A program made the position numbers and the translations under genes. DNA of 64,000 nucleotides from Cyanophora paradoxa CCMP329 (lineage: Eukaryota > Plantae > Glaucophyta), in the NCBI GenBank assembly GCA_004431415.1, contig QPMI01000522.1:62001-126000 (forward strand), read 5' to 3'. How positions within the stretch are numbered: the stretch's first letter is position 1; each line of letters opens with the position of its first letter. Shown piece after piece: positions 2,050 to 38,358 of this stretch. The notes below the pieces were generated by a model. That model was not told the DNA's origin and made no database searches. It saw only the letters and a list, made by a program, of their open reading frames with translations.

Positions 2050-3517
2050 ATGCCCGGCATCCTCGATTTCCTGAAGCCCGGCGTCGTTACCGGAGACAAC
2101 CTCATCAAGCTCCTGCGCTATGCTCAGGAGCACGAGTTCGCAATCCCCGCCGTGAACTGCACGTCCTCGAGCAACATCAATGCCGTTCTCGAGGCCGCCA
2201 AGGAGGCGAAGGCGCCCATCATGATCCAGTTCTCGAACGGCGGCGGCGCGTTCTACGCGGGCAAATCGATCACTTCTGATGGCCAGAAGGCGGCGATTCT
2301 GGGCTCCATCTCGGGCGCGCTCCACGTCCGCACGATGGCTGAGCACTACGGCGTGCCGGTTGTCCTGCACACGGACCACTGCGCGAAGAAGCTCCTCCCC
2401 TGGCTCGACGGTGTGATCGAGGCCGGTGCGTCCTCTCCGCGCGCCTCTTCTGACGTTTAGGATCGGTCATTTAGCATGTGTTTGTGGCTTCGCGCGTGCG
2501 GTCATGCGATCTGCCGCGGCGGAAGCGCCGGTGTTGCCTTTTTCCGTGCGTTGATGTCCTTTCGTCTCCTGCAGACGAGAAGTACTTCCGCGACCACGGC
2601 GAGCCCCTCTTCAGCTCTCACATGATCGATCTCTCGGAGGAGCCGCACAAGGAGAACGTCGAGATCACCGCGAAGTACCTGCAGCGCCTCAAGGCCGTCA
2701 ATGGCTTCCTCGAGATGGAGATCGGCATCACTGGCGGCGAGGAGGACGGCGTCAACAACGAGGGCATCGACAACTCTAAGCTCTACACCCAGCCCGAGGA
2801 CATTGACCTCGTGTACCGCACCCTCAACCCCATCTCCCCGGCCTTCTCGGTCGCCGCTGCTTTCGGCAACGTGCACGGCGTGTACGCCGCGGGCAACGTT
2901 AAGCTCTCGCCCGAGATCCTCGGCAACGCGCAAACCTACGTCGCTCAGAAGCACAACCTCAAGGAGAAGAAGGTCCGTCCCAGATCCTGGCCCGCCGATC
3001 ACTGCGCGCGGCCCTCGTTGAAGTTCCGGTGACGTACTCAGCCTGTTCTCTTCGTCTTCCACGGCGGCTCGGGCTCCGAGAAGGCGAAGATCCACGAGGC
3101 CATCCGGTACGCTGGTTCTTTTCCCATGTGCCGCCTGCGCTTCGCTGACGGCCCTCCTCGCAGCCACGGCGTGGTCAAGATGAACGTCGACACTGATTTG
3201 CAGTGGGCGTACTGGAACGGCATTCGCGTGCGTTAATACCGCTTTCCCGTCCCTTGCCTGTTCCTGATTGCGCCTTTCGCAGGAATTCTACGCCAAGAAG
3301 AAGGACTACCTGCAGGGCCAGCTTGGCAACCCCGAGGGCGAGGACAAGCCGAACAAGAAGTTCTACGACCCGCGCGTCTGGCTCCGCGAGGCGGAGAAGG
3401 TGCCGCCCGACCGGCGCCGCGGCGGTCTGCGCCCCGTCGCCTCACGCGGCCGCGCAGACCATGATTACCCGCGTGAAGGAGGCTCTCACCGATCTCAACT
3501 GCGTCAACCGCCTGTAA
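2050..3517 (+). CDS. FBA: Fructose-bisphosphate aldolase class II (yeast/E. coli FbaA type), 6 exons, probably cytosolic
   Basis: Motifs FAIPAVN, LHTDHCAKKLLPW, FSSHMIDLSEE, EIGITGGEEDGV, AAAFGNVHGVY, VFHGGSGS, VVKMNVDTD, PNKKFYDPRVWLR. Five GT-AG introns restore the frame. No N-terminal extension. Confidence 0.96.
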
Positions 3518-4180
3518 AGCGTGCATCATGGCATGCGGCGCACTAGCGCCCTCGGACAGGCCCAGCCGCCATTCGAAGGGCGGCGAATATGGTATGTACA
3601 GGAAAAGAAACAGTTGCAGTATCTAATTTAACGTAAAAGCCGTGTCCACGCTGTCCACGCTGCCCCTGCATGCTACCACAGCGCTCATGTGACCATCGGA
3701 TCGCATTGCATGCACTGCGGCATGCATATGCATACTATGATATGCATGTTCGAGTATTAATTTTCAGAATTTCCCGGATTGAGTCTAGATATCGATTGGC
3801 ATCATCAGTGGGTGTGCGCATATATATGCATCATGATCATAACTTAAAATTCAAAAAATAACACTAATAGTTTAATATATCAATTAATAGTTTAATATAT
3901 CAGTTGCAGGCACTGTGCTGGAGCATCACAAGAAACGCATATGGGTCTGAGCGAAGCAGATCAAATCTACCACTAGTCCTGGACCTCCCTACCCTATGCA
4001 GGTCTAAACAAATCATAGTCTACAGGGGCACGCTGACTGTTGAAAATACTTTACAGTTGCGAGAATATTAGGCGGACCATAAACCACAGTGCCTCACTCA
4101 CCGTGAAGCGGAAAAAGGAGCGCGGACCAAAAAAACACGGATCCGGCGCCCGAAAATAGGGGACCGCGCACGGCGGACCC

Positions 4181-24226: not shown

Positions 24227-27027
24227 ATGAAGCGGCCCGCGAGCACCAGCTTCGCCCTGGAAGTGCCGAAGCTCCCGAGGACGCCCAGCGCAGATCGGCT
24301 CAATGCGATGCGCGATACTGTGTTGGTGCGTGGTATTCGCCGCGTGTGACGCAGCCTATGCAAGTTCGCGAACCCTGCAGGCCCGCCTGCAGTCAGCCTA
24401 GCTGCTGTCAGAAGTTGAAGCCGCCACCTAGATTTAGTTTCAGGCGCTCCTGCTGACGTGTAGCGCGAGCTGACGTGCTGCTTCGTGGCTGGTGCGTTTG
24501 TCGCAGGTCCGGAGCTTGCCGCACATCAAGGACCTCTATCCCGAGACGATGCCCATGCCATCACCACTGGCAACCTCGGCTCACGGTGTCTCGGCGCCCA
24601 CCGACGGCTCTGGCGGCACGGACTGTTCGCTAACCTTCGTGCGTGCTGGACTCGGGCTGGGCGGAGCGCTGCGGCTCCTTAACGATCCGCAGGTCGAGCC
24701 CGGCACGCTTGTGCTCGCGGACATCGTGTTCCGGGAGATCGAAACTGACGAGAAGCCGCTCACGGTCTCCGGCCCCTTCTACCTGCGCGCCGGCCCTTTC
24801 GAGGAGATCTTCTGCGACCCGAAGACCGTGAAGGCGTGCATCGTCACGTGCGGAGGTTCGTGCGGCCGCCCGAGCGAAACTTCCCTACGCTCCGCCGCTC
24901 ACCTTCGTCCTCGTCCCCCCCCCCCCCCCCCCCCCCTCCCCCGGGGGCTGGCCTCCAGGACTCTGCCCCGGTGCGGCACATCGCTCCCACATACAGACGT
25001 ACACCTGATTGCTCCGATCTCTGATCCAACCCTCCCCCCGCAGGTCTCAACAACGTGCTTCCCCGCTCCCTTCGAAGCCTCCCCGCGCCGCCCGCCCGCG
25101 CGAGCTGAACGGGCCGCGCGCTCAGGTGATCCGCGAGATCGTCATGACGCTCTGGCGTGCACGTACCCGTCCACGGCGTGCCCTCCCCTTCCCCTCTCAT
25201 GCTTCTCTTCGTTCGCAGGTACAACTACGGCTGCAAGGATATCTACGGAATCCAGTACGGGTCCGCGCGCCCCTGCGGCTGCCCCTGCGGAGGCCTCTCG
25301 CCGCGCTGCACCCCGCGCCGACGGCCGCGCCGGCAGATACCGCGGCTTCTACGATCCGGCGCTGGCGATTCTGAAGCTCGACCCGACGCGCGTCTCCAAC
25401 ATTCACCACCAGGGCGGCACCATCCTCGGTCCGCCGCCCCGCCCCGCCGCCCCGCCCCGCTGCTCCGGCTTTGAGCCAAGCCCCGCCTCGCAGGCTCCTC
25501 CCGCGGTGGATTCGATAAGGAGGCCATCATCTCCAGCATCATCGACCACGGTACCCCCACCCGCCCGCCGTACCCCGGGACGCCCGCCGAGCCCGCCCCA
25601 GGGTTCAACCAGGTGTACATCGTCGGCGGCGACGGCACGCACCGGGGCGCCCAAATCATATTCGACGAGTGCTACAGCCGCGGCCACAAGGTGAAAGCGC
25701 CGCACCCCCCGTATCCGATCGCGTACTCCGGCTCGAGCGTCGGGCGGGGGGGTACAGGTGCTGGTGGCGGGCGTGCCGAAGACGATCGACAACGACATCG
25801 CGATCATCGACAAATCCTTCGGTTCGTAGTGGGGGTACCGCGCTCGGAGGGGGGTACGCGCCGACGCGCCCCGCAGGCTTCGACACGGCGGTCCAGGAGG
25901 CGACCCGCGCCATCAACAGCGCCCACGTGCGATGTACCCCCTGCACGAAGTTTTCCCCCATTCCGACGCCAGTACCCCCCAGGTCGAGGCCGAGTGCGCG
26001 CCGAACGGTATTTCCATCGTCAAGCTCATGGGCCGCAACGCCGGTACACCCCGAACGCTTGTCCACGCCGTACCCCCCTCGACCCCTGCACCCCAGGCTT
26101 CCTGGCCATGTACGCCGCCCTGGCCAGCCGCGACGTGAACGTCTGCCTCATCCCGGAGGTCCGCATCGTACCCCTGCCCCGCCCCGCAACCCCGTACCCC
26201 GGACCCGAAGCGGGGGAGTACCTGGCAGGTCAAGTTCCGCATGGAGCCGCTGTTCGCGTACCTGGAGCGGCGGATCCGCGAGCGGGGCCACGCAGTCGTG
26301 CTGGTCGCCGAGGGCGCCGGCCAGGACCTGCTCCCGGTACCCCCGTCTCTCCTTCCCCCCCCCCCCCCCCCCCCCCCCCCCGTCGACCAAGCGGGGCGCG
26401 CGCAGGCGACGGGGGCGACGGACGCGTCGGGGAACGTTCGCCTCGGGGACATCGGAGCGTTCCTCAAGAAGGAGATCGAGGGCCACTTCAAGAAGGCGAG
26501 GCCGCCGTACCCCTCCCCGCTTCGCCCCCCCCCGGCTGAGGCGTACCCTGGCCCCCAGATCAAGATGGAGAGCAACGTCAAGTACATTGACGTGCGTACC
26601 CCCTTTCCCTTCTTAGGCGTGCCGGCCGGCACGCTCGCTTACCGAACTCTCGAGCGCAGCCGACGTACATGATCCGGACGCTGCCGGCCAACGCATCGGA
26701 CACGGTGTACATCGCGCAGCTCGTCCAGAACTGCGTCCACGGCGTCATGGTGCGTGCACGTACCCCCCTCCGTTCCGCCCCTCCCCCGACTCCGGTGCAG
26801 GCGGGGTACACGGGCTTCACGGTGGGGATGATCAACTCGCGGGTGGTGTACCTTCCCTTCGAGGACATCTGCGGGCGGCCGCAGCACGTGGACCCGTCCG
26901 GGCGCATGTACCAGGTACCCCCAGAACTTCCTCCCCCCCGGCCTTCCTCCCCGCCCCTGCCCGGCTCTGCAGCTGATCCCGCGCACAGCGCCTCATCGCC
27001 TCGACGGGCCAGCCGTCGCTGTATTGA
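24227..27027 (+). CDS. PFK: ATP-dependent 6-phosphofructokinase, plant/group X type, intron-rich
   Basis: [91 protein letters not shown] together with PKTIDND is the group X ATP-PFK signature. The start at 24227 is inferred. Confidence 0.93.
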
Positions 27028-27379
27028 GCCCGGTCGCTATAGCTGTGTGTATGTGAATTGGCCAAAACGTAACCAGAAACTGCGAGTCGGCGTCCCTCTT
27101 GCATAGCAGATGCGCAGTGTTGTCATTGCCGAGTCGGCAACGACTCGAACGTGCACGCATGCGCACATCGTGGCACGAGCTCGAGGCCAGCTTGCAGACC
27201 TAGGCCTAGAGCTAGTCGACGTCGCTGATCATGAGATATATATACTATGATATGAATCCGCGATCGAAGCTAGGGCAGACGTCCACCTTCGAACTGCATG
27301 CGCAGATCCGCATGCGCCACTTATATAGCTCTCAGCTGCAGAGTCTAGATCTCTTAAAGCTTCATATATAATGATTATA

Positions 27380-27383
<4 letters not shown>

Positions 27384-27409
<26 letters not shown>
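27384..27409. repeat. (GTC)n microsatellite
   Basis: Directly visible. Confidence 0.8.
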
Positions 27410-27410
<1 letters not shown>

Positions 27411-28357: not shown

Positions 28358-29075
28358 TAGGGGTGCGGCTTGCCGGCCAAAAAGTCGGCTTAAGCCAAGC
28401 CAAGCCCCGGGCGCTCACGTGCACGGTCAAGCCAAGCCAATTGCAAGCCGGCCGGCCGGCCGGCCCAAGGGCTTGGGCTCCCGGCGGGGTCAAGCCCTTG
28501 GCCGGGCTTGCGGCAAGCCTAAGGGGGGGTACCCTTCCGCAGGCCCTTGGCGCTGTGGCGAAATGCTTATATATATATTTAGCTTCGAATTCACAAAGAA
28601 ACGCATCATGTCACAAAGAAACGAGAACGCGGCCGGCTGCGGCCGTGCCGCGCATGGATGTCGATCGACGGGCCGTGCGAGCTCGAGTGCGAGCTCGAGG
28701 GGGTACGTATATACGTATACCGTATACGTATATACTATATATGATATACGTATACGTATACCGTACGTACCGTAGTACGCCGGCGTGTGCACGCGTCTGT
28801 TAATTATAATTAATGCACGTTGCCGTCGCAGGCTTATAGCTTAAGCTTCTAATCAGCTTCGATTCGAATATTAATGCGCTGCAGGCGCGCAGCTGCGTCG
28901 ACGTCCGGCACCCCCCTCCGACCCCCCCCCCCCCCCCCCCCTCCCCCTCCAGGGCTTGAGCCGGCTTGAGCCGGCCAAAAGCCGGGCAAGGGCTTGACCC
29001 CCCAGCCCGGCTCAAGGGCTTGCAATTGGCTCAAGGGCTTGCCTGCAAGCCGCAGGCCTATCACCAAGCCCACGG
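28358..29075. mobile_element. Two oppositely oriented putative DNA-transposon ends (hAT-like) with CAAGCC/GGCTTG subterminal motifs
   Basis: 28436-28522 (GCCAATTGCAAGCC..GGGGTCAAGCCCTTG..CAAGCCTA) resembles the reverse complement of 28950-29050 (CAGGGCTTG..CAAGGGCTTGACCCCC..GGCTTGCAATTGGC). No transposase seen. Confidence 0.4.
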
Positions 29076-29804
29076 GCCAAACTTGACATGTGATTTCATG
29101 CAAATCGAAAAAGGCTCATCTTGTCCCTTTCATCACGGCCGATATTTCAAGTTTCAAATCCTTTTTTCTTTCGTCCTAGATTTCTCGCTAGTGGTCGGTG
29201 CCGATTTCCGCATGCGCAACTTCAGCGCAAGCCTCAAACTGGAAGCCTACTCGCAACTTGAGTCGCAAGCGGCCGCTTAGCGGCGTAACGTCAACTGCGG
29301 TAAGCCTTTGATCATGAGAACTCTCTAGATCTTGAAGCCTTGAAGCCTTGAAGAGCTTGCGATCAAGCCGAACCGAGACGAGCCGAGCCGCTCGAGGGTA
29401 CTGCCGGCGCCAGGCTGGCACATCGCGGACGGGTCAGCAGGCCTGCATCAGGCTGCATGATATAGCAGCAGGTCCAAGCCTTGAAGAGAGCGGCCGGGCG
29501 CTAGCGCTGCATGCACTGCGGCATGCGCAGCTGGAGCCGCGGCCCGTGCATGGCCGCGGGCCGAAGGCCGCTAGTCGAGCCGGCTAGCCAGTCGGCTTGA
29601 TTAGGGCCGCATGCGGCATGCCTATATATAGCTACCGCCGCCGGTCCGGCGGTCCGAGTCCGCGTCGACGTCGACTCTGCGTCGACTTTGCGATTCCCAT
29701 GATTCATCGATATCGGATCGATCGGCGATCTTGTAACTTAGTAAGTTGACCAGGACCTGCGGCTTGCAGTCAAGCCCATGTTCATGAATCAAATAATTGC
29801 AGCT
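29044..29804 (+). repeat. Left copy of ~761-bp direct duplication flanking the retrotransposon
   Basis: Runs TGCAAGCCGCAGGCCTATC..AAATAATTGCAGCT. By eye it matches 37597-38358 except one G in a homopolymer. Confidence 0.95.
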
Positions 29805-32540
29805 ACTGAGCCTACTGATAGCCTACTGAATCGCACGGAGGACACGGAGCTGGGCAGAATCATTGGCTCGCTGAGAAACGGGGCGGCAGGGCCCTCGGGC
29901 CTCTCGAATGAAATGATTAAGATGCTGTGGAGTGACCCTGTCCTCCCCAAGAAAACGCTCGAAGAGCTGAAGAAAGCGGGCCTGGACACCTCGGCCCTCC
30001 AGTCCGAAAACAGAACGCCAACCTGCAGGCGGCTTCTACTGGTGACGGTCAACCTGATTCTAGAGCTCGGAGCTGTTCCTGAACCTCTGCTCTACGGAAA
30101 TATCTGCCTGATCCCGAAGAGCGGGGAATGGGACGGGCACCCTGACAACGTCAGACCGATAACACTGCAAGAATGCGCCCTGAAACTGGTAACAGCTCTT
30201 CTCACGGATAGACTCTCCAGGATCATCCGAAAGAACGAACTACTGAAGGGCGCAAACTACGCCTTTACACGTGGTAAATCGACGGACGAGCCGCTCTACA
30301 TGATGCGCGCATTACTTGAAGATGCGAAACAGTTCTCTAAACCGATCTACCTGCTCCTCCTTGACATCCGTCGAGCCTACGACAGCGTGAGCTGGCCCAG
30401 CATGGCGATGGCCCTCCGCCGCCTCCGCATCCCTGAGAAGTACATTCAGCTGTACGAACAGCTCACGACGCGGCGCAAGGCATCGGTCCTCACCGGGTAC
30501 GGCCCCACCGAACCGTTCGATGTCGAGTGCGGGCTTCCCCAGGGGGGTACGGAATCGCCTATCCACTGGCTCATCTTTTACGATGTCTTCCTTACGGCCC
30601 TGCGCGAAGTCAGCGCGGCGGAGGGTACAACATACCGCATGGGGCCCGGGATCGCACCTCGCCCGGCCCCCCCGCCAGCTCACCGCCTCCGGGCTCACCT
30701 CCCCGACGTTGACTCGCCAGGGCAGGCCTACGCGGACGACACCGTGCTCATCAGCTCGTCCGCGCGGGGGGTACAACTGCATGCGGACCTGGTATCGGAA
30801 TTCTTCTGGATCCACGATATCGCCCTGAACGCGAAGAAGACTGAGTTCACTTATAACAACGTATCTCCCGAGCCCAAACCGCCCCTCCTTGGCCCGCCTG
30901 GGGCTAAGGAGCGTGCGCACCACGTCCTGCCTCCGACGAAGCCCTTCAAGTTCCTGGGGTCTGGTTTACCGCGGACCTAAATTGGAGGCATCAGTTCGAA
31001 GCGGTCTACACGATGGCGCAGACCGCCTGCGCGATCCTCAAGAAAAAGAAGCTCACCGCAAAGGAAGCAGTGTACATTGTGAACAGCGTACTCATCCCGC
31101 GCATCACGTACGCCTGCAAGGTTGTCGCGTACACCGAGCGCCAGTGCGCCCAGATAGATACCCTGTGGATGACGCTAGTCAAGCATCAGGCGCGCCTCCG
31201 CCGCTCGGCGCCCAACGCCCTAATATGGAGCCGCGGATTCTATGGGCTGAAGCGCCTGGCAGACGAGCAGCTCGCCATACACGTCCTAGACGAAACAATC
31301 CGCGCGAACCACCCGACGCTTCGCCCGTATCTCCTCCACCGCGTGTTCGCGGCGCAGGAAAAGCTATGCCTTCCTCTCCCCCCGTACTGCTATCCGAACC
31401 TAGATCCAGGCCCGGCCCTCCGGCGCGATCATCTAGCCCTCGCTATAGCCCGAAATATGAATGCGGAGGGCTACATCCTCGACTCGGGAAGGTCGCACCT
31501 GACTCCGGCCCTCCCGCATCCTCGACTCGAACGAAGATTCGTCCTCACTACGCTTCTACCGCCAGCCCTCCTCCGCAGCGCCGCGCCGTTCCTGTGGGAA
31601 CACGATCTGCTGACGGCGGCGGACATCACGGGCCCGGACGGGCGCACCGTTCTGGACTGGGCGAGCCTCTGGGGCAGCGGCCGCGTCCGCCAGCGTCTCA
31701 GCCGGGCGCCGTCGTGGTTCCCAGACTTCCTCCGCGCAATCTGCGAGCCCGTCCCGCCGAGGAAGCTCCCACGCTCCCTGCGCTTCCCATGCACGTGCTC
31801 AAGCAGGGGGCGCGGCGCCAGCAGACGCTTTTCGAAGCGAACCTGATGAGCCCGCCGTACGTGGAGGGACAGTTCGCCTGGCACCCGCAGGGCTACCTGA
31901 CGCGCATCGTTAGCAAATGGGAGGAGCGCGATGAAGACGATGGGCGCCTCCGCGTGTACGTCCGCCTGGAACATTGGATCTGGCGCGACCGCACGATCCG
32001 CGACGGCGACGGGGAGGGCGCCGCCCGATTCTACAAGTGCACGATGCTCAAAGATGAGTGCGATGCGCGGTACACGACGGACGATGCGACAGCCAAGGCG
32101 GCGCGCCAGCGCTGCGACCACTCTGAGCCGGAGTCAGGCGCCTGCCAGTGGACCGAGGACTCCATCCACATTCACCCGGCCCGCCTCCTCGAGCTAATCA
32201 CCCCGGCGACCCGCACGCGGAAGCACGAACCGTACGCGGTTGTGAAGCTAGAGAGTCAGGAGTGGTGGACCGAGTTCCGCACGACGCTCTTCCTTCCTCC
32301 GTGGGAACGCGATTGGGATTACGAAGCGGATCCCTCCGCGCAGCCCCAGCCGCCGTCGGGCTACAAGCAACGCCGCCCGGGTACAGTGCCACCGCGCACC
32401 GCACCGCCTGTATACCCGGATCGCCAGCCTCTCGAGCACTTTCTCATCGACCCGGAGCCCCTAGCCGACCCGTTCTGGAACCTCGTAGCCCAGGAGCTTC
32501 GCCGCGAGGAGCTCCCCGCTGCCCGGCCCCGAGAGTGGCG

Positions 32541-33555
32541 GCGACCGATGCCAGCACAACGGGGTTCGGATCCGAGGCGGCGCTAACGGCTTACGCGGGT
32601 GTCTGGACCCGGGACCACGAGCAGAACGCGGCGCACTCCCCAGCGGATCGGCAGCGGGAAGCCCAGCGCCGCAGCGAAGGTATACAGCTGAAAAACCAGC
32701 TGCTGCGTGAAGCCGATGCATGCGCAGAAGATGACGCCCCACAGGCGGCGGCCCTGCGGGAGCTCGCCGAAGCCATCCCCACGGACGGCAGCGACTTCTT
32801 TGTCGCCCCGTGCCCGGGCACTGTCAACAACAACAAAGGCGAGCTCCTCGCCGTCCTCACGGCCTTCTTAAAGTCGCCCGAGGGCTGCACAGTTAAGACA
32901 GACAGCTCGACGGCGATGTCACTCATCCGCCGCTCTGTCCTGCACCGCGCTGACTCGACGGTCCGCAGCGGCCTTCGCACCAACTTCTCGCACCATCTGC
33001 GAGCGGCTGCAGAAGTCCATCAGCACCGCAGAGCCCTCGCCGCCGCCGCCGGAAGGCCACCCGCCGAGGTCCGCGTACAGAAGGTGAAGGCGCATCAGAA
33101 AGAGTACACTGACCGGCCTGCGCCTGTCGCCCCGGCAGAGCCCGAGACGGACAGCGATGCGGACGACTCCGGATCGTACGTGTCCTACCTCTCCGCCCCG
33201 GACGACCTCCCCCCCGAGCCCTCTGACGCCGAGCTTATCGCCAAATTCGGCGAGGGACAAGGGGTGTACGCCGGGCGCCCGAACCCGCTTTCGGGCGCTT
33301 ATAACTACCTGTCCGAGCACATCCGTGCGCGCACTGCTCACCTCCGCCGCCGCGAGACTCGACGCATTCTCCACCAGATCGAACGTCAGACCCGCAAGGC
33401 GCGCCGGGAGGAACGCCAGCGCCGTCGAGACGCGCTCGCGGCTCTCGGCCCCACGTTCCCGCCCTCGCCGGCCTCCCGATCGCCCAACGCATGGAGAGGG
33501 TACTGAATGATGCGTACGACCGGGATAACCACCGAGCCGACCGCCTCGCCGCAGC
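32541..33555 (+). other. RNase H domain of the LINE, with long insertions
   Basis: TDAS, NNNKGELLAVLTA, VKTDS, KVKAH and NHRADRLA supply the D-E-D-(H)-D catalytic set. Confidence 0.8.
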
Positions 33556-35359
33556 GGCGCTCGCCCTGCACCCCTGCGCCCCGTTCTCCAAGGCCTGCAG
33601 CGATGGCCACGGCCTCAATGCCTGGGCTGACGTCGAGAGCGCCACCTGGCAGGCAGATCCCGCAGTCGCATCCGACCCCGCCGTCTCGGCTGCCGCAAAA
33701 CGTGCATGGCTAGCACGGCGTGAGCCCCTCTTTCCCCCCGGCGGGTTCGAGTTCGTCCTCCTCTTCTCACCCCCCCGCAGGAGCCTGGAGGGGTACGACT
33801 CCAGCAGAGCGTACCGCGTCGAGTCCGACCCCCGGGCCCACGTCCGCGCCGTCTGCGAAATGCGTAACTTCGTGCGGCTGACGTCGCTTGAATCCTCGTG
33901 GCTCGGCGCCCCGGCCGACCGGGCACGGCTCGCGCGCGAATTCCGTAAGCAAGGCGCCTCCCGCGACGCGTCAGCCCCGTTCAATGCCCGCCTTGCGCAG
34001 CTCACCAAATTCAGCATGGAACTCGCGCCCCTCCTACCTGTCCGTGCCCGCGATGCCCCACACCTCTACGGCAACATCAACCCGCAAGGCCTGTGCGTAC
34101 GCCCTGGGTGCGCTCGCGTCGCCGACGCCTCCGGCGGCCCCATCCCGGCACCCCCCTGGGCACCGAGGCGCGACCCAGGAGCCGCCGCAACCGCAGACCG
34201 CGACCCCCCGCCGGCGCTCCACAGCGCGAGTCAACCCGAGACCCACGACCACGCCTTCGGCCTTTGTTCGGCATCGCAAGCGGCCCGGCTCGCTATGCAA
34301 TCCAAGATTTACAACCTCCTCCACACAACGATCACCACGCAGAGACTAAAGTCGGCCGCAACGAGGTACGAGCTCCCGGACGGCCTGAAGTCGGACGGCC
34401 TGTTCCTCCGCGACCTATTTCCCGCCTTCGCCCTCGCTGACGAACGCCGCTGGCGTCAGACCGTGCACGAACGCTCGCGACCCGGGCCTGTACCCCCCCA
34501 CCTCCGTGCCTGTCTCTACGGCTCCCCCTCCCGCTGGCTGACTCACGGACAGGCCCTTTTCACCGACCTCTCGCACGACTCGCCCCGCCTGTCCGTCCGG
34601 CTGCTCCTCCCCCGCAGTCTGGTCCCGGCCCTCGAGTACCTTCATGTTCGCGCCCCCGCTGCTCGTAAATGCGCGAACGGGATCTTTGATGTACTTGTGA
34701 CGGGGCTCCAGGAGATTTGGCAGGCGCGAAACTCGGACGTCCAAGCCTGGCAGCGCCGCTGTGGCCTCACGCGTCGGACTCTGACGGCGCCCCGACCCCC
34801 GCCAGCAACAGACCCCGCGGCCCGCCGAAGAAGCCGCCGCGCCCGGGAGACACGCCCTCAGCCGGACCCGAACCCGCAGCCCGCACCCGTAGTGCTGGTC
34901 AGTAGTATTCCGGTACCCCCAAGCGTACCGGAACGCGCCCGTCTCCAGCCGACGGCAGCGCCAGCGCGCGATGCGCACTCAGCAGTAGGCCGGTCGAGCA
35001 CAGACCGTCCAGCTTGCCCGCCCTCCCCGCCCGACGCCCATGACCTGATGAATGTCGCCGCAGACAGCCCGCACAGCCCGCCCACGAACCTCAAAGCAAC
35101 CTCGCGATCGGACGCCCCTCCCGTGAGCTCAGCCCCCAGCTTAACCCTCCACCCCCCTGAGCCCCCAGCGCCTCACCCGCCGGAGCCCCGGCACTCACCC
35201 TTGCCCGCGGCCCCGACCCGCCCGCAGCCCAGCCCGTGGCCCCCCCTGCCGCCGTCCGAAGAGGTCCGCCTAGCGTGGGCACAGACCCGACCCGGCCCGC
35301 TAAAGCCTGCGCAGGAAGTACTCCGACAGATCTCCTCGCCGCTGCTCGGTACCTCGGGC

Positions 35360-35980
35360 AGCATCAACGTCACAAGGAGATCTCTCAGTCGGCTCAATGG
35401 TGAGACCTGGTTAGACGACGAGACCGTTGTCTTCTACCTCGCCCTCCTCGCCCAACTCCCTGCCCTGGCCCGCCGTCCACTAATCTTTGACTCGCTTGAG
35501 TACCCTAACCTCTCCGCGCCAGGCCGAGGCCCCCAGCGCCTTCACAACAAGCTGGTAGCCCGCGGGGTCAGCCCGTTCGACTTCGATGTTCTGCTCTTCC
35601 CGATCCACTCACCGGGCCACTGGACCTTCGCTGCGATCCACGTACGTGACCGTCGAGCCGAACTCTATGATGCCTACAACCTGCCAAACGCAGAGTCGGC
35701 TCGAGAGAAGCTGGCCCCGATTCTCCGCTGGCTCCAGCTCGAGCGCCGGGAACGCAACCTCCCCTCAGACGACCCCACCGCCTGGCCGCTTGCATCGGCC
35801 ACCAGGTACCCCATCCCCGAACAACGGGACCGCTTCAGCTGCGGTGTAATTGTCTGTGCCCTGGCAGACGCCCTGGTCCGGGGCCAAGAAGACGCGCTCA
35901 CGGACCCCAACTCGCCCTTCGATGGCAGCAGCCGGTGCTGCGCCCACTGGCGCAGCCTCATCCTCACCCGAATCCTAGCC
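35360..35980 (+). other. Ulp1/SENP (peptidase C48) domain within the LINE polyprotein
   Basis: LSRLNGETWLDDETV, LLFPIHSPGHW (His 35618), ELYDA (Asp 35669), PEQRDRFSCGVIV (Gln 35822, Cys 35840). Confidence 0.88.
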
Positions 35981-37596
35981 ACAAGCCAACGGCCCCCAGC
36001 ACCCGGACCCGGCCCCAGAGGTCCGCCCCAGCCCCCTCCGGCTCCGGCTCCACCCCCGCCGCCGCGAGCCCCGGACCCCCCGCCCCCCCCACGCCCCGCC
36101 CCGCCCCCCGCCTCGCCTCGCCCACCTCCGACAGGCCGACCGGAGGCGACAGGCCCTTCCTCCCGACTAGGTGCCGGCACAGCTCGACCCGGTAAGGGCC
36201 GCGGCAAAGGCCGCGGCAGAGGGACGACCGTGGCGATGCGCCCCCTCCAATCCTACTTCCGGTCCGCGGTCGGTCTCTCCCCCGTTCTCCCCGGCCCCGA
36301 CTCGCAACTGCCCCCTCCCCCTCCGGACTCCCGCCGCCCCGCCCCAGCGGACCCTCCGCCACCCCCGGCCCCCTCCCCTCGCCCGCCCGACCGGCCCCTC
36401 CACCGTCCCCCGGCCCCGTCTCCCCCCCCTCCCCCCCAGCCCCCTCCCCCCCACACCCCCCAGCCTCCTCCCCCTCCCCGCAGCCCAGCCCCGCTACCCC
36501 GCCGCCTCACGCGCCGCGAGCGTGAGCTGGCCGCCCTCCGTGACTCGGCCGGCTTCACCTCCGCCCGCAACAATCTTCTTGCACGTGGAGACCGCGGAGC
36601 CCGACGTGCAGGTCCGGCTGTCCCAGCCCCTGATCCACAGGACCGCCCCCCCCCGGACCCCCCCGCCTCGGTGAACCTCTCTGACCCCCCCACACCGCCG
36701 TCACCCGTCGAACCGCAAGACCGGCCCCCGCCCCGCCAGCCCCGCGCCCCCCGCCGCCGGGCCCCCCCACCACCGCCGGCACCGCCCTCGGTCCCCGCAC
36801 CACCGCCCCCATTCGAGTTTTCCGCCCGCGCGCGCCAGCTCCACCCCGAGGCACTCCCGCCCCCAGACCGATGTCCCCTCTGCCTACACCCCTGGGCCGT
36901 CACCGCCGCCTCCACCGAGCCCCGTACCCCCTTCTCTGCCCCCAAGGTACCACCCCTGCTCCACCGCGGCGACCTCATCCAGTCCCTCCTCATCTTCGGC
37001 CTCTCCCCGCTGGGCTACAGACCCTGAGCCCAAAGTGTGCACTCCCTGCCCGCGCGCGCCGGGCTGACGCCACGCTCGCGCTTGAGAGGCCCACTCCTGG
37101 AGGAGAGCAGGCCCCTCGGGCGTGGCCTGCCTGCCCGCGCCAGGTCCGGTCCCGCCGCGCAGGTGCAGGCTGCCACGCCGCTGGCAGCCTGCAGGGCGGG
37201 ACCCGCCGCCGGATGGGGGCCCCAACCCCTCCCCCGGGGCCCCGCGCCCGGCGGCGCTCGCACCGCAGAGGCGGTGCGCAATAAATCCTCCGGGGCCCTG
37301 CCCAATAAACTCTCCGGCCCCAGCTCCCCACCCCCAACCCCACCCCCCCAATGGCCGCGCTCGCGCGGCCGCTGGGGGAGGCCCCACCGAGGGCCGCAAG
37401 AGTGGCCTTAGGGGGTAGGGCTCGCAGTAGGGAGATTCCCTCGGGGTTAGTCTAGCTGGAGACCCAATAGGGGGGAGGTAAGCTAGACTTGTCGTGTGTT
37501 TGTAGGCCTAGGCCTAGGGTAGGCAGATAGCATTAGCTGTTTGTCAACTTGGGGCACCAGTCCCCTAATACACTAGGGATTACTGAAAAAAAAAAA

Positions 37597-38358
37597 TGCA
37601 AGCCGCAGGCCTATCACCAAGCCCACGGGCCAAACTTGACATGTGATTTCATGCAAATCGAAAAAGGCTCATCTTGTCCCTTTCATCACGGCCGATATTT
37701 CAAGTTTCAAATCCTTTTTTCTTTCGTCCTAGATTTCTCGCTAGTGGTCGGTGCCGATTTCCGCATGCGCAACTTCAGCGCAAGCCTCAAACTGGAAGCC
37801 TACTCGCAACTTGAGTCGCAAGCGGCCGCTTAGCGGCGTAACGTCAACTGCGGTAAGCCTTTGATCATGAGAACTCTCTAGATCTTGAAGCCTTGAAGCC
37901 TTGAAGAGCTTGCGATCAAGCCGAACCGAGACGAGCCGAGCCGCTCGAGGGGTACTGCCGGCGCCAGGCTGGCACATCGCGGACGGGTCAGCAGGCCTGC
38001 ATCAGGCTGCATGATATAGCAGCAGGTCCAAGCCTTGAAGAGAGCGGCCGGGCGCTAGCGCTGCATGCACTGCGGCATGCGCAGCTGGAGCCGCGGCCCG
38101 TGCATGGCCGCGGGCCGAAGGCCGCTAGTCGAGCCGGCTAGCCAGTCGGCTTGATTAGGGCCGCATGCGGCATGCCTATATATAGCTACCGCCGCCGGTC
38201 CGGCGGTCCGAGTCCGCGTCGACGTCGACTCTGCGTCGACTTTGCGATTCCCATGATTCATCGATATCGGATCGATCGGCGATCTTGTAACTTAGTAAGT
38301 TGACCAGGACCTGCGGCTTGCAGTCAAGCCCATGTTCATGAATCAAATAATTGCAGCT
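37597..38358 (+). repeat. Right copy of ~761-bp direct duplication, starting immediately after the poly(A)
   Basis: Same sequence as 29044-29804 with one extra G. Confidence 0.95.

Follow-up and report, generated by a model that had tools for sequence, protein, structure and literature searches.

A young LINE family of the glaucophyte Cyanophora paradoxa encodes a SENP/Ulp1-type protease domain near the C terminus of its polyprotein

Does the Ulp1-like protease frame at this locus of Cyanophora paradoxa belong to a LINE retrotransposon, and if so, what might the protease do for the element? Within the window, meaning the whole 64-kb stretch of contig QPMI01000522.1 that was analyzed, positions 33491 to 37027 had been given a preliminary description as a LINE whose C48 (Ulp1/SUMO protease) domain follows reverse transcriptase (RT), RNase H, and a zinc finger in one open frame. 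Transposons are known to carry proteases that act on ubiquitin-like (UBL) modifiers: Ulp1 in MULE, Ginger, and NeSL elements, OTU in Helitrons, and Josephin in Dualen. To our knowledge, function has been demonstrated for none of these transposon-encoded enzymes. All coordinates below are window positions on the + strand.

The locus holds a 7,793-bp, 5'-truncated insert (29804 to 37596) between two copies of a target site duplication (TSD) of ~760 bp (29044 to 29803 and 37597 to 38357), which match except for one G-homopolymer indel. TSD identity ends exactly at the 5' junction of the LINE, the insertion site is otherwise unique sequence, and the window contains this single LINE copy. The 5' end of the insert falls within the region upstream of the RT. 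At the other end, the 3' untranslated region and tail (37285 to 37596) finish in A11 at 37586 to 37596, 3' of every LINE domain including C48, just as the preliminary description had placed them; the terminus, TTACTG(A)n, is common to a metagenomic relative, P0010/L001 (ENA ERZ27275054, contig k141_121716). The RT itself (30111 to 30962, YADD at 30729) was matched by Pfam RVT_1 with an E value of 9.9e-26. The insert thus combines an RT with truncation at the 5' end, an A-rich tail at the 3' end, and a flanking TSD, all hallmarks of a LINE, and the earlier identification of the element as a LINE is upheld. It is near certain that 29804 to 37596 arose when a member of an active Cyanophora paradoxa LINE family with a single ORF inserted recently, in 5'-truncated form. 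Insertion occurred by target-primed reverse transcription, primed from an A tail, and a second-strand break ~760 bp away from the first-strand break accounts for the ~760-bp TSD.

The open frame at the center of the preliminary description (33491 to 37027, 1178 aa) was confirmed. Shuffling the stretch 500 times with its composition preserved never produced an open frame of at least 1178 codons (mean, 308; maximum, 638), so the frame exceeds a mere side effect of 70 to 80% GC. Rather than starting at the ATG at 33491, the frame continues the RT-RNase H ORF. Comparison with the gene model P0002 placed four frame changes between the RT and the 33491 frame, all at G/C homopolymers. Short-read contigs from DNA runs of the same organism carry one additional base at each site (30955, 31785, 32526, and 33446), and therefore the family ORF runs unbroken from RT to C48, across RNase H and CCHC. 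The frameshifts resemble long-read assembly errors at homopolymers, and the frameshift-corrected protein that had been called for is probably unneeded. Short-read contigs also add a C at 36888 that, if real, shifts the stop from 37027 to 37284, and contig comparison gave further indels in the tail region at 36329, 36336, and 36341. The single frame from the end of RNase H through zinc finger and linker to C48 stands as described, but 33491 is not its start, and 37027 may not be its stop. Separately, spurious long frames arise on both strands of this GC-rich DNA.

By phmmer against the PDB, the RT matched the RTs of R2 and L1 ORF2p at a similar distance to both (E = 5e-13 to 1e-9). The thumb/post-RT region (30956 to 31785), which lies in another frame of the window (homopolymer indel), gave phmmer matches to the corresponding region of ~60 related LINE ORFs. 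The RNase H-like domain (32532 to 33140) contains a ~60-aa insertion and reached 23.1 bits with Pfam RNase_H, below the 25.8 cut-off, but its D, E, D, H and final E-x-x-D line up with the strong RNase H domains of relatives; the RNase H call is borne out by these catalytic residues and not by the profile. The LINE C-terminal domain (33728 to 34771) was matched by tblastn to P0010 residues 2948 to 3300 (E = 1.6e-11). It comprises a CCHC finger at 34094 to 34267 (CVRPGC at 34094 to 34111, ETHDHAFGLC at 34238 to 34267) and an IWxxR(C/N) helix at 34712 to 34732 (EIWQARN), so both the zinc finger and the EIWxxRN motif are where they had been reported. In an alignment of 17 such domains (A4; the query and 16 relatives), the only invariant residues were C, C, E, H, C, W, and R.

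By RT, the LINEs closest to this family have an APE-RT-RNase H-CCHC architecture, and an Exo_endo_phos domain is found at the N terminus of P0010, P0013, P0016, P0027, P0029, P0045, P0064, and a Cyanophora sister family, P0015. The Cyanophora LINE likewise has RNase H after its RT and a CCHC domain toward the C terminus; this copy is truncated upstream of the RT, and an APE is predicted for the family from its relatives. The polyprotein order of the family is, near certainly, (putative APE, as in relatives)-RT-RNase H-CCHC domain-Pro-rich linker-C48-Pro/Arg-rich tail.

A similar order occurs in the Dualen/RandI LINEs of Chlamydomonas, which are described as APE-RT-RNase H-RLE elements with a cysteine protease of Josephin-like type at the end (PMC8557442, PMC9977147). 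Could the Cyanophora element be a member of that clade in which Ulp1 has replaced the Josephin-like protease? The order RT-RNase H-CCHC domain-cysteine protease is the same except for the RLE, and Dualen-4b_cRei insertions typically have very long TSDs (median, 900 bp; PMC9977147). Moreover, the AF2 model of the CCHC domain (pLDDT 72) aligned best with the C-terminal ZnF/RLE parts of R2Tg (Z = 10.1) and R2Bm (Z = 8.8), albeit with poor rmsd. The C-terminal domain of human L1 ORF2p is nearly as good a match, however (Z = 7.8). Foldseek of the model against the PDB gave nothing at an E value of ≤0.001, and phmmer of the CCHC region against the PDB gave no match. The 17 aligned domains contain no conserved PD-(D/E)xK residues, and the all-helical model has no beta-sheet core and no such fold. 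Because no restriction-like endonuclease was found, and with no Josephin match, we reject a Dualen identity as very unlikely.

The protease domain lies at 35342 to 35920, after a Pro-rich linker (34823 to 35341; aa 445 to 620, without homology matches) whose 26% Pro agrees with the earlier report. C48 proteases are recognized by His, Asp, and Cys, with an oxyanion Gln, in order, and by two Trp that form a Gly-Gly tunnel. Pfam PF02902 (Peptidase_C48) matched aa 640 to 804 with an E value of 2.6e-10 (40.9 bits; cut-off, 20.7), and phmmer against the PDB matched the catalytic domain of human SENP1 over its full length (E = 6.7e-18; query 18 to 210, chain 25 to 211). Over 193 aligned residues, Trp640, His710, Trp711, Asp727, Gln778, and Cys784 line up with SENP1, in the motifs ETWLDDE (35402 to 35422), GHWTF (35615 to 35629), LYDAYN (35663 to 35680), and EQRDRFSCG (35819 to 35845). 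The Atlas feature search with C48 returned Peptidase_C48 clusters only (score, 0.96), and no protease family other than Peptidase_C48, Josephin included, was matched by Pfam. A single-sequence AF2 model of the domain had a pLDDT of 48.9. Judged by its sequence, the domain is a complete SENP/Ulp1-type, SUMO-protease-like C48 domain with an intact catalytic set, as had been claimed. It is followed by a Pro/Arg-rich C-terminal tail (35993 to 37284, 34% Pro; stop at 37027 in the window).

If the C48 frame were a fragment of an adjacent host Ulp1 gene, or a chance frame of the kind that arises on both strands of GC-rich DNA, it would lie outside the LINE. It sits instead inside the pair of TSD copies, 5' of the A tail; multicopy contigs contain it, as do gene models located on other contigs; its full-length SENP match is highly significant; and the shuffled sequences all fell short of the frame length seen here. 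These results refute that reading, to which we give practically no chance. The family is multicopy, with copies about 99.8% identical: a contig from run X3 had a word depth of ~590, with 8 differing positions in 4,077 bp, and the X3 multicopy contig runs 4,346 bp further 5' than 30940. Several gene models from other copies (EukProt Cyanophora_paradoxa accessions) hold C48; among the EukProt models P0001 to P0008, several are mis-spliced pieces of the LINE. Since C48 is in frame within a TSD-flanked insert and present in both the high-depth multicopy contigs and the other-copy models, it belongs to the element, as had been proposed, and is not a one-off capture.

A family-wide domain could still be a neutral passenger: a host SENP fragment, acquired not long ago through an event such as 3' transduction or template switching, that persists only because the family is young. 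The near identity of the copies fits this, and in so young a family intact catalytic residues say little on selection. A protease is absent from most of the related APE-RT-RNase H-CCHC LINEs and is therefore dispensable for the clade. C48 also scores higher with SENP1 (68 bits) than with the C48 of P0010 (31 bits), as would fit a fairly recent cellular capture. RNA points the same way. Contigs at least 99% identical to the LINE occur in runs X15 and X17, with GT..AG joints on the + strand; that these runs are RNA is a guess, on which the family is probably transcribed, with cryptic splicing. Two of the sense splices (35641 to 35694 and 35802 to 35865) would remove the catalytic Asp, Gln, and Cys.

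Against a passenger, substitutions among copies are biased to synonymous sites. The contig variant lists gave 16 synonymous versus 8 nonsynonymous changes up to the end of C48 and only 7 versus 4 inside C48 alone; in the tail, at 36043 to 36211, 5 of 5 were synonymous, and the sole indel within the domain is 6 nt, in frame. Furthermore, P0010, whose RT is the closest outside Cyanophora (43 to 45% identical), retains a C48 with the catalytic set. P0010 encodes 3,720 aa in one ORF, with APE, RT, and an RNase H-like region, and shares the CCHC C-terminal domain and the TTACTG plus A-rich 3' end. Its C48 is detectably similar to that of Cyanophora, with His, Asp, Gln, and Cys aligned, but had no match to any SENP by phmmer against the PDB, which hints at a shared, old acquisition. 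Unlike the Cyanophora LINE, P0010 carries a pair of C48-like regions, of which the first is degenerate and without His. The pair, only ~25% identical to the Cyanophora C48, is placed after RNase H but before the CCHC domain. Word-indexed protein searches (CCHC plus C48, C48 in a long ORF, or C48 alone) recovered same-family Cyanophora gene models only and were uninformative on the source of the domain. On balance, we regard a neutral passenger as unlikely.

What, then, might the protease do? The preliminary description had offered two candidate functions, removal of SUMO silencing marks and processing of the element's own polyprotein. Clan-CE proteases of adenovirus, poxviruses, and ASFV process viral polyproteins, and C48 might likewise cut the giant LINE polyprotein in cis, for example to free a core of RT, RNase H, and CCHC from the Pro-rich tail. 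Like that of P0010, the ORF has great length, and Pro-rich linkers flank the protease on both sides. A protease retargeted to non-UBL sites should, however, be much farther from SENP1/2 than this domain, with its E value of 7e-18 and both tunnel Trp; Pfam found neither a ubiquitin-like fold nor a SUMO-like C-terminal motif in the ORF; and related LINEs of similar length do without a protease. We consider processing in cis distinctly improbable. Our preferred reading, rated at nearly even odds, is that the domain would be a catalytically competent deSUMOylase acting in trans. Moving in cis with the LINE ribonucleoprotein, it may strip SUMO off host proteins, either SUMO-dependent silencing factors or repair and replication factors at the integration site, and SUMO removal would favor expression or integration of the LINE. 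As a whole, the explanation that combines LINE identity, insertion, and the deSUMOylase role has a probability of roughly 0.55 in our estimate.

No APE/RNase H-type LINE with a C-terminal Ulp1 was found in a search of published papers. The earlier view of this arrangement as undescribed holds to that extent, but the idea has precedent in the Josephin-like domain of Dualen and the Ulp1 of NeSL/Utopia. C48 in a LINE, in the same frame as the RT/RNase H/zinc-finger tail, is a new position and a new host element for known transposon cargo. The finding places a high-quality SENP-like domain in a young, multicopy, apparently transcribed family of a culturable alga, so that the purpose of a transposon deSUMOylase becomes testable by enzyme assay with a catalytic mutant.

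A broader and more tentative possibility, which we think somewhat doubtful, is that a glaucophyte-associated clade of APE-type LINEs keeps a SENP-like deSUMOylase as a working module that would counter SUMO-dependent silencing or remodel SUMO-controlled repair where the element integrates, with TSDs of hundreds of bp and no RLE. The module would occupy two polyprotein positions: after CCHC in the Cyanophora family, but before CCHC in P0010, where a pseudo-protease is paired with a protease. Giant Dualen TSDs have been suggested to need two endonucleases (PMC9977147), a suggestion on which a ~760-bp TSD from a LINE without detectable RLE bears; if the clade is real, giant TSDs would not need the dual nucleases of Dualen.

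The Cyanophora LINE can be set beside other known systems. It shares with Dualen a giant single ORF with RT, RNase H, a CCHC-containing C-terminal region, and then a papain-like cysteine protease of a class acting on ubiquitin-like modifiers, and in both the TSDs span hundreds of bp (a median of 900 bp in Dualen-4b and ~760 bp in this insertion). They differ in that the protease is C48 rather than Josephin-like, in the RLE, which was not detected here, and in the host, a glaucophyte rather than a chlorophyte. Disruption of protein degradation has been proposed as a role of the Josephin-like domain of Dualen (PMC8557442). NeSL/Utopia elements likewise include an Ulp1-like C48 protease in a non-LTR ORF, but theirs is N-terminal, with an RLE, no APE, RNase H absent or upstream of RT, and target-specific integration (PMC4640811). 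In the Cyanophora LINE, C48 instead follows RNase H and CCHC on the C-terminal side, the nearest relatives carry APE, no RLE was found, and insertion was into unique sequence with a 760-bp TSD; membership in NeSL/Utopia was rejected. Ulp1 is also fused to the transposases of Ginger1, Mutator-like, and other DNA transposons, where a role for Ulp1 or OTU in ubiquitin/SUMO control of transposition or repair was proposed earlier (PMC2836005). The catalytic domain is again C-terminal to the main enzyme, and the same hypotheses of SUMO and DNA repair control apply, but those are class II cut-and-paste elements and not retrotransposons. Unlike cellular SENPs, the Cyanophora domain is embedded in a retrotransposon polyprotein without N-terminal targeting regions, but it resembles SENP1 and SENP2, of the Ulp1 branch, over the full-length catalytic domain, with the triad, the oxyanion Gln, and both tunnel Trp conserved.

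The open frame at 33491-37027 (+) encodes 1178 residues. Long spurious frames are common in this stretch, where GC content is 66 to 80%; a frame of 1178 codons was not found in any of 500 shuffles of the stretch (mean of 308, maximum of 638). The preliminary description had read from this frame a zinc finger, an EIW motif, a Pro-rich linker, and the motifs of a C48 (Ulp1/SENP-type) protease, and inspection confirmed the frame and all of these features where it had placed them. The CCHC finger consists of CVRPGC (34094-34111, +) and ETHDHAFGLC (34238-34267, +), EIWQARN lies at 34712-34732 (+), and the linker between the CCHC domain and C48 is 26% Pro. The C48 residues are Trp640 in ETWLDDE, His710 and Trp711 in GHWTF, Asp727 in LYDAYN, and Gln778 and Cys784 in EQRDRFSCG. 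The assignment held when the ORF was compared with Pfam, where PF02902 (Peptidase_C48) matched residues 640 to 804 (E value of 2.6e-10, 40.9 bits against a cutoff of 20.7). A sequence search of the PDB covered the catalytic domain of human SENP1 in full (E value of 6.7e-18), followed by matches to SENP2, SENP5, and yeast Ulp1, and the catalytic and tunnel residues lined up with those of SENP1. A protein language model search returned Peptidase_C48 clusters only.

The insertion that carries this frame is bounded by a long direct repeat. The segment 29044-29803 is repeated at 37597-38357 with a single G homopolymer as the sole difference, and identity of the duplicated flanks stops exactly at the LINE start on the left and resumes exactly past an A11 run (37586-37596) on the right. 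Because this identity bounds the LINE and the A11 run, the insert is 29804-37596 (7,793 bp) with a target site duplication of ∼760 bp. The “RT ORF” opens with an ATG at 29778, inside duplicated host DNA. The RT (+; YADD at 30729, RVT_1 E value of 1e-25) is followed by a thumb region (+) and then by an RNase H-like domain with a ∼60-residue insertion, which scored 23.1 bits in Pfam, under the threshold, and whose D, E, D, H, and D residues correspond in alignment to those of relatives with a strong RNase H domain. After this come, 5′ to 3′, the CCHC C-terminal domain, the Pro-rich linker, C48, a Pro/Arg-rich tail, and a ∼0.3-kb 3′ untranslated region. The start of the window copy lies ∼70 residues before the RT core, and the copy is therefore 5′ truncated and without any endonuclease. 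Upstream of the insertion and outside the element, an intron-containing, phosphofructokinase-like host gene lies at ∼24500-27100 (+), recognized from motifs in ORF fragments such as IVGGDGT and GYTGFTVG, and the intergenic DNA contains simple repeats, (TCG)n and a long C run, at 27350-27410 and 28900-28940.

The coding sequence in the window switches frame four times between the RT and the 1178-residue ORF. P0002, a gene model from another copy, crosses the two sharpest of these junctions without a break. Short-read contigs of the organism, from two DNA runs, contain one extra base at 30955, 31785, 32526, and 33446, exactly the four switch points, and further single extra bases at 35132/35151/35161, 36329/36336/36341, and 36888; each trio keeps the frame. 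All 11 extra-base sites are G or C homopolymers. The Cyanophora paradoxa genome is a PacBio RSII assembly in which repeats received limited correction by short reads (PMC6704402). These sites are probably assembly undercalls, residual long-read indel errors in repeats that introduce false frameshifts into the LINE. On this reading, the family, and probably the window copy, has one continuous ORF from the RT to the tail, and with the extra C at 36888 included, the stop would be at 37284 instead of 37027.

An exhaustive HMMER search with the RT as the query found 84 RT representatives at an E value of ≤1e-30. The long relatives share the order APE (Exo_endo_phos), RT, RNase H, and ∼300 to 400 further residues, and P0015, from a Cyanophora sister family with an RT ∼54% identical, has APE at its start. 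The C-terminal residues of the relatives align with the window CCHC domain, with invariant C..C..E..H..C and IWxxR(C), and no conserved PD-(D/E)xK residues were found in this alignment. An AF2 model of the domain built on the alignment (pLDDT of 72) is helical except for the zinc knuckle. Foldseek returned no significant match to this model, and its closest neighbors by exhaustive structural alignment were the C-terminal regions of R2Tg (Z score of 10.1), R2Bm (8.8), and human L1 ORF2p (7.8), with the next at 5.4. From the absence of PD-(D/E)xK, the helical model, and these R2 and L1 neighbors, we identify the CCHC domain as the zinc-binding C-terminal domain common to non-LTR RTs, and nothing in it points to an active restriction-like nuclease. 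We therefore rejected Dualen/RandI identity, as that clade, whose protease is Josephin-like, requires a restriction-like endonuclease (RLE) (PMC8557442, PMC9977147). NeSL/Utopia identity was also rejected, as Ulp1 is N-terminal there and accompanied by an RLE (PMC4640811). Target site duplications of the ∼760-bp class are on record for Dualen-4b of Chlamydomonas, where they were ascribed to dual endonucleases (PMC9977147); the duplication here (29044-29803/37597-38357) was generated by a LINE without a detectable RLE. Descent of the element from Dualen is very improbable. By architecture, the element probably belongs with the APE-type, RNase H-bearing LINEs.

All eight word-index homologs are EukProt C. 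paradoxa gene models from other copies (P0001 to P0008), near-identical to the window where aligned and chopped by predicted introns. C48 belongs to the family rather than to one copy, as several of these models contain a C48 segment. A contig from sequencing run X3 (word depth of ∼590) shows 8 differences to the window over 4,077 bp and reaches 4,346 bp past 30940 on the 5′ side, which puts the length of a full element at about 11 kb or more. Over 35813-35962, both DNA runs contain two contig populations, one of which is the window sequence, while the second has nine substitutions, five of them synonymous, plus a 6-nt insertion at 35876 that keeps the frame and lies directly behind the catalytic Cys. 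The two populations indicate that there are at least two subfamilies. Variation was read from assembled contigs rather than individual copies, and a single genomic copy was read directly. In these contigs, and in small numbers, among-copy substitutions were 16 synonymous versus 8 nonsynonymous through the end of C48, 7 versus 4 inside C48, and, over the first 80 tail residues, 5 versus 0, all five at 36043-36211.

Contigs of two runs guessed to be RNA match the element at 99% identity or more, and the family is probably transcribed. These contigs contain short GT..AG joints (+) at 33944-34001, 34106-34178, 34363-34458, 34645-34712, 35641-35694, and 35802-35865, and CT..AC joints, an antisense signature, in the RT region at 30974-31055, 31590-31647, and 31776-31842; none of them was found in the DNA runs. 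The sense splices would cause a frameshift within the CCHC domain and the loss of the C48 catalytic residues Asp, Gln, and Cys, and the frame collinear with SENP1 is the unspliced one. The joints look like cryptic splicing of LINE RNA, those of the CT..AC type possibly marking spliced antisense transcripts. Such splicing accounts for the odd EukProt models: P0001 to P0008 follow the guessed-RNA splices, and pieces of the LINE are thereby annotated as genes.

Among the best 150 RT representatives, C48 was detectable in P0010 only. This 3,720-residue ORF spans an 11.9-kb ENA metagenome contig (L001), and its RT, 43 to 45% identical to that of the Cyanophora element, is the closest outside Cyanophora. 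The ORF runs from APE through RT and an RNase H-like region to a degenerate C48-like segment with the His replaced (residues 2239 to 2355), then to a second C48 with GHW, YDG, and QQRNTCG (residues about 2520 to 2730), and then to the same prefinger and CCHC domain as in Cyanophora (residues 2948 to 3300, E value of 1.6e-11). C48 is thus found in the two closest lineages but at different positions in the polyprotein. The Cyanophora C48 scored 68 bits against SENP1 and 31 bits against the P0010 C48; the latter found no SENP in the PDB, although it does match the Cyanophora C48. This pattern of similarity would fit one old acquisition followed by fast divergence and relocation, and also two acquisitions. 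Both elements end in TTACTG and an A-rich run (window 37570-37596, L001 11840-11863), and this shared terminus may be a conserved signal by which the RT recognizes the 3′ end. Past C48, the Cyanophora tail contains a basic GKGRGKGRGRG run and then MRPLQSYF (36191-36259), resembling the PCNA-interacting (PIP-box-like) xxxLxxYF motif, and the P0010 tail contains SRSLLEYF and RKTITAFF (residues ∼3360 to 3370 and ∼3543 to 3552); as short candidate motifs, these are a weak lead.

The LINE polyprotein contains a SENP-type domain that looks intact, and the family is young, multicopy, and probably transcribed. The domain most likely recognizes SUMO, because the full SENP1/2 catalytic domain signature is kept, including the Gly-Gly tunnel. 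Self-processing of the LINE polyprotein by C48, one of two roles offered in the preliminary description, is unlikely, and it is rather unlikely that C48 is a neutral recent passenger. We prefer, with a probability of about 45 to 50%, a trans-acting deSUMOylase directed against host silencing or repair factors. As LINE proteins work in cis, on the RNP of their own element, the protease would be carried to the integration site.

The Cyanophora genome paper reports LINEs as a percentage only (PMC6704402). An APE/RNase H-type LINE with a C-terminal Ulp1 was not found in the full-text literature searched. In that literature, Ulp1 is known from NeSL/Utopia and DNA transposons, and Josephin is known from Dualen. 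A role similar to the deSUMOylase activity preferred here was suggested earlier for transposase-fused Ulp1/OTU (PMC2836005) and for the Josephin-like domain of Dualen (PMC8557442).
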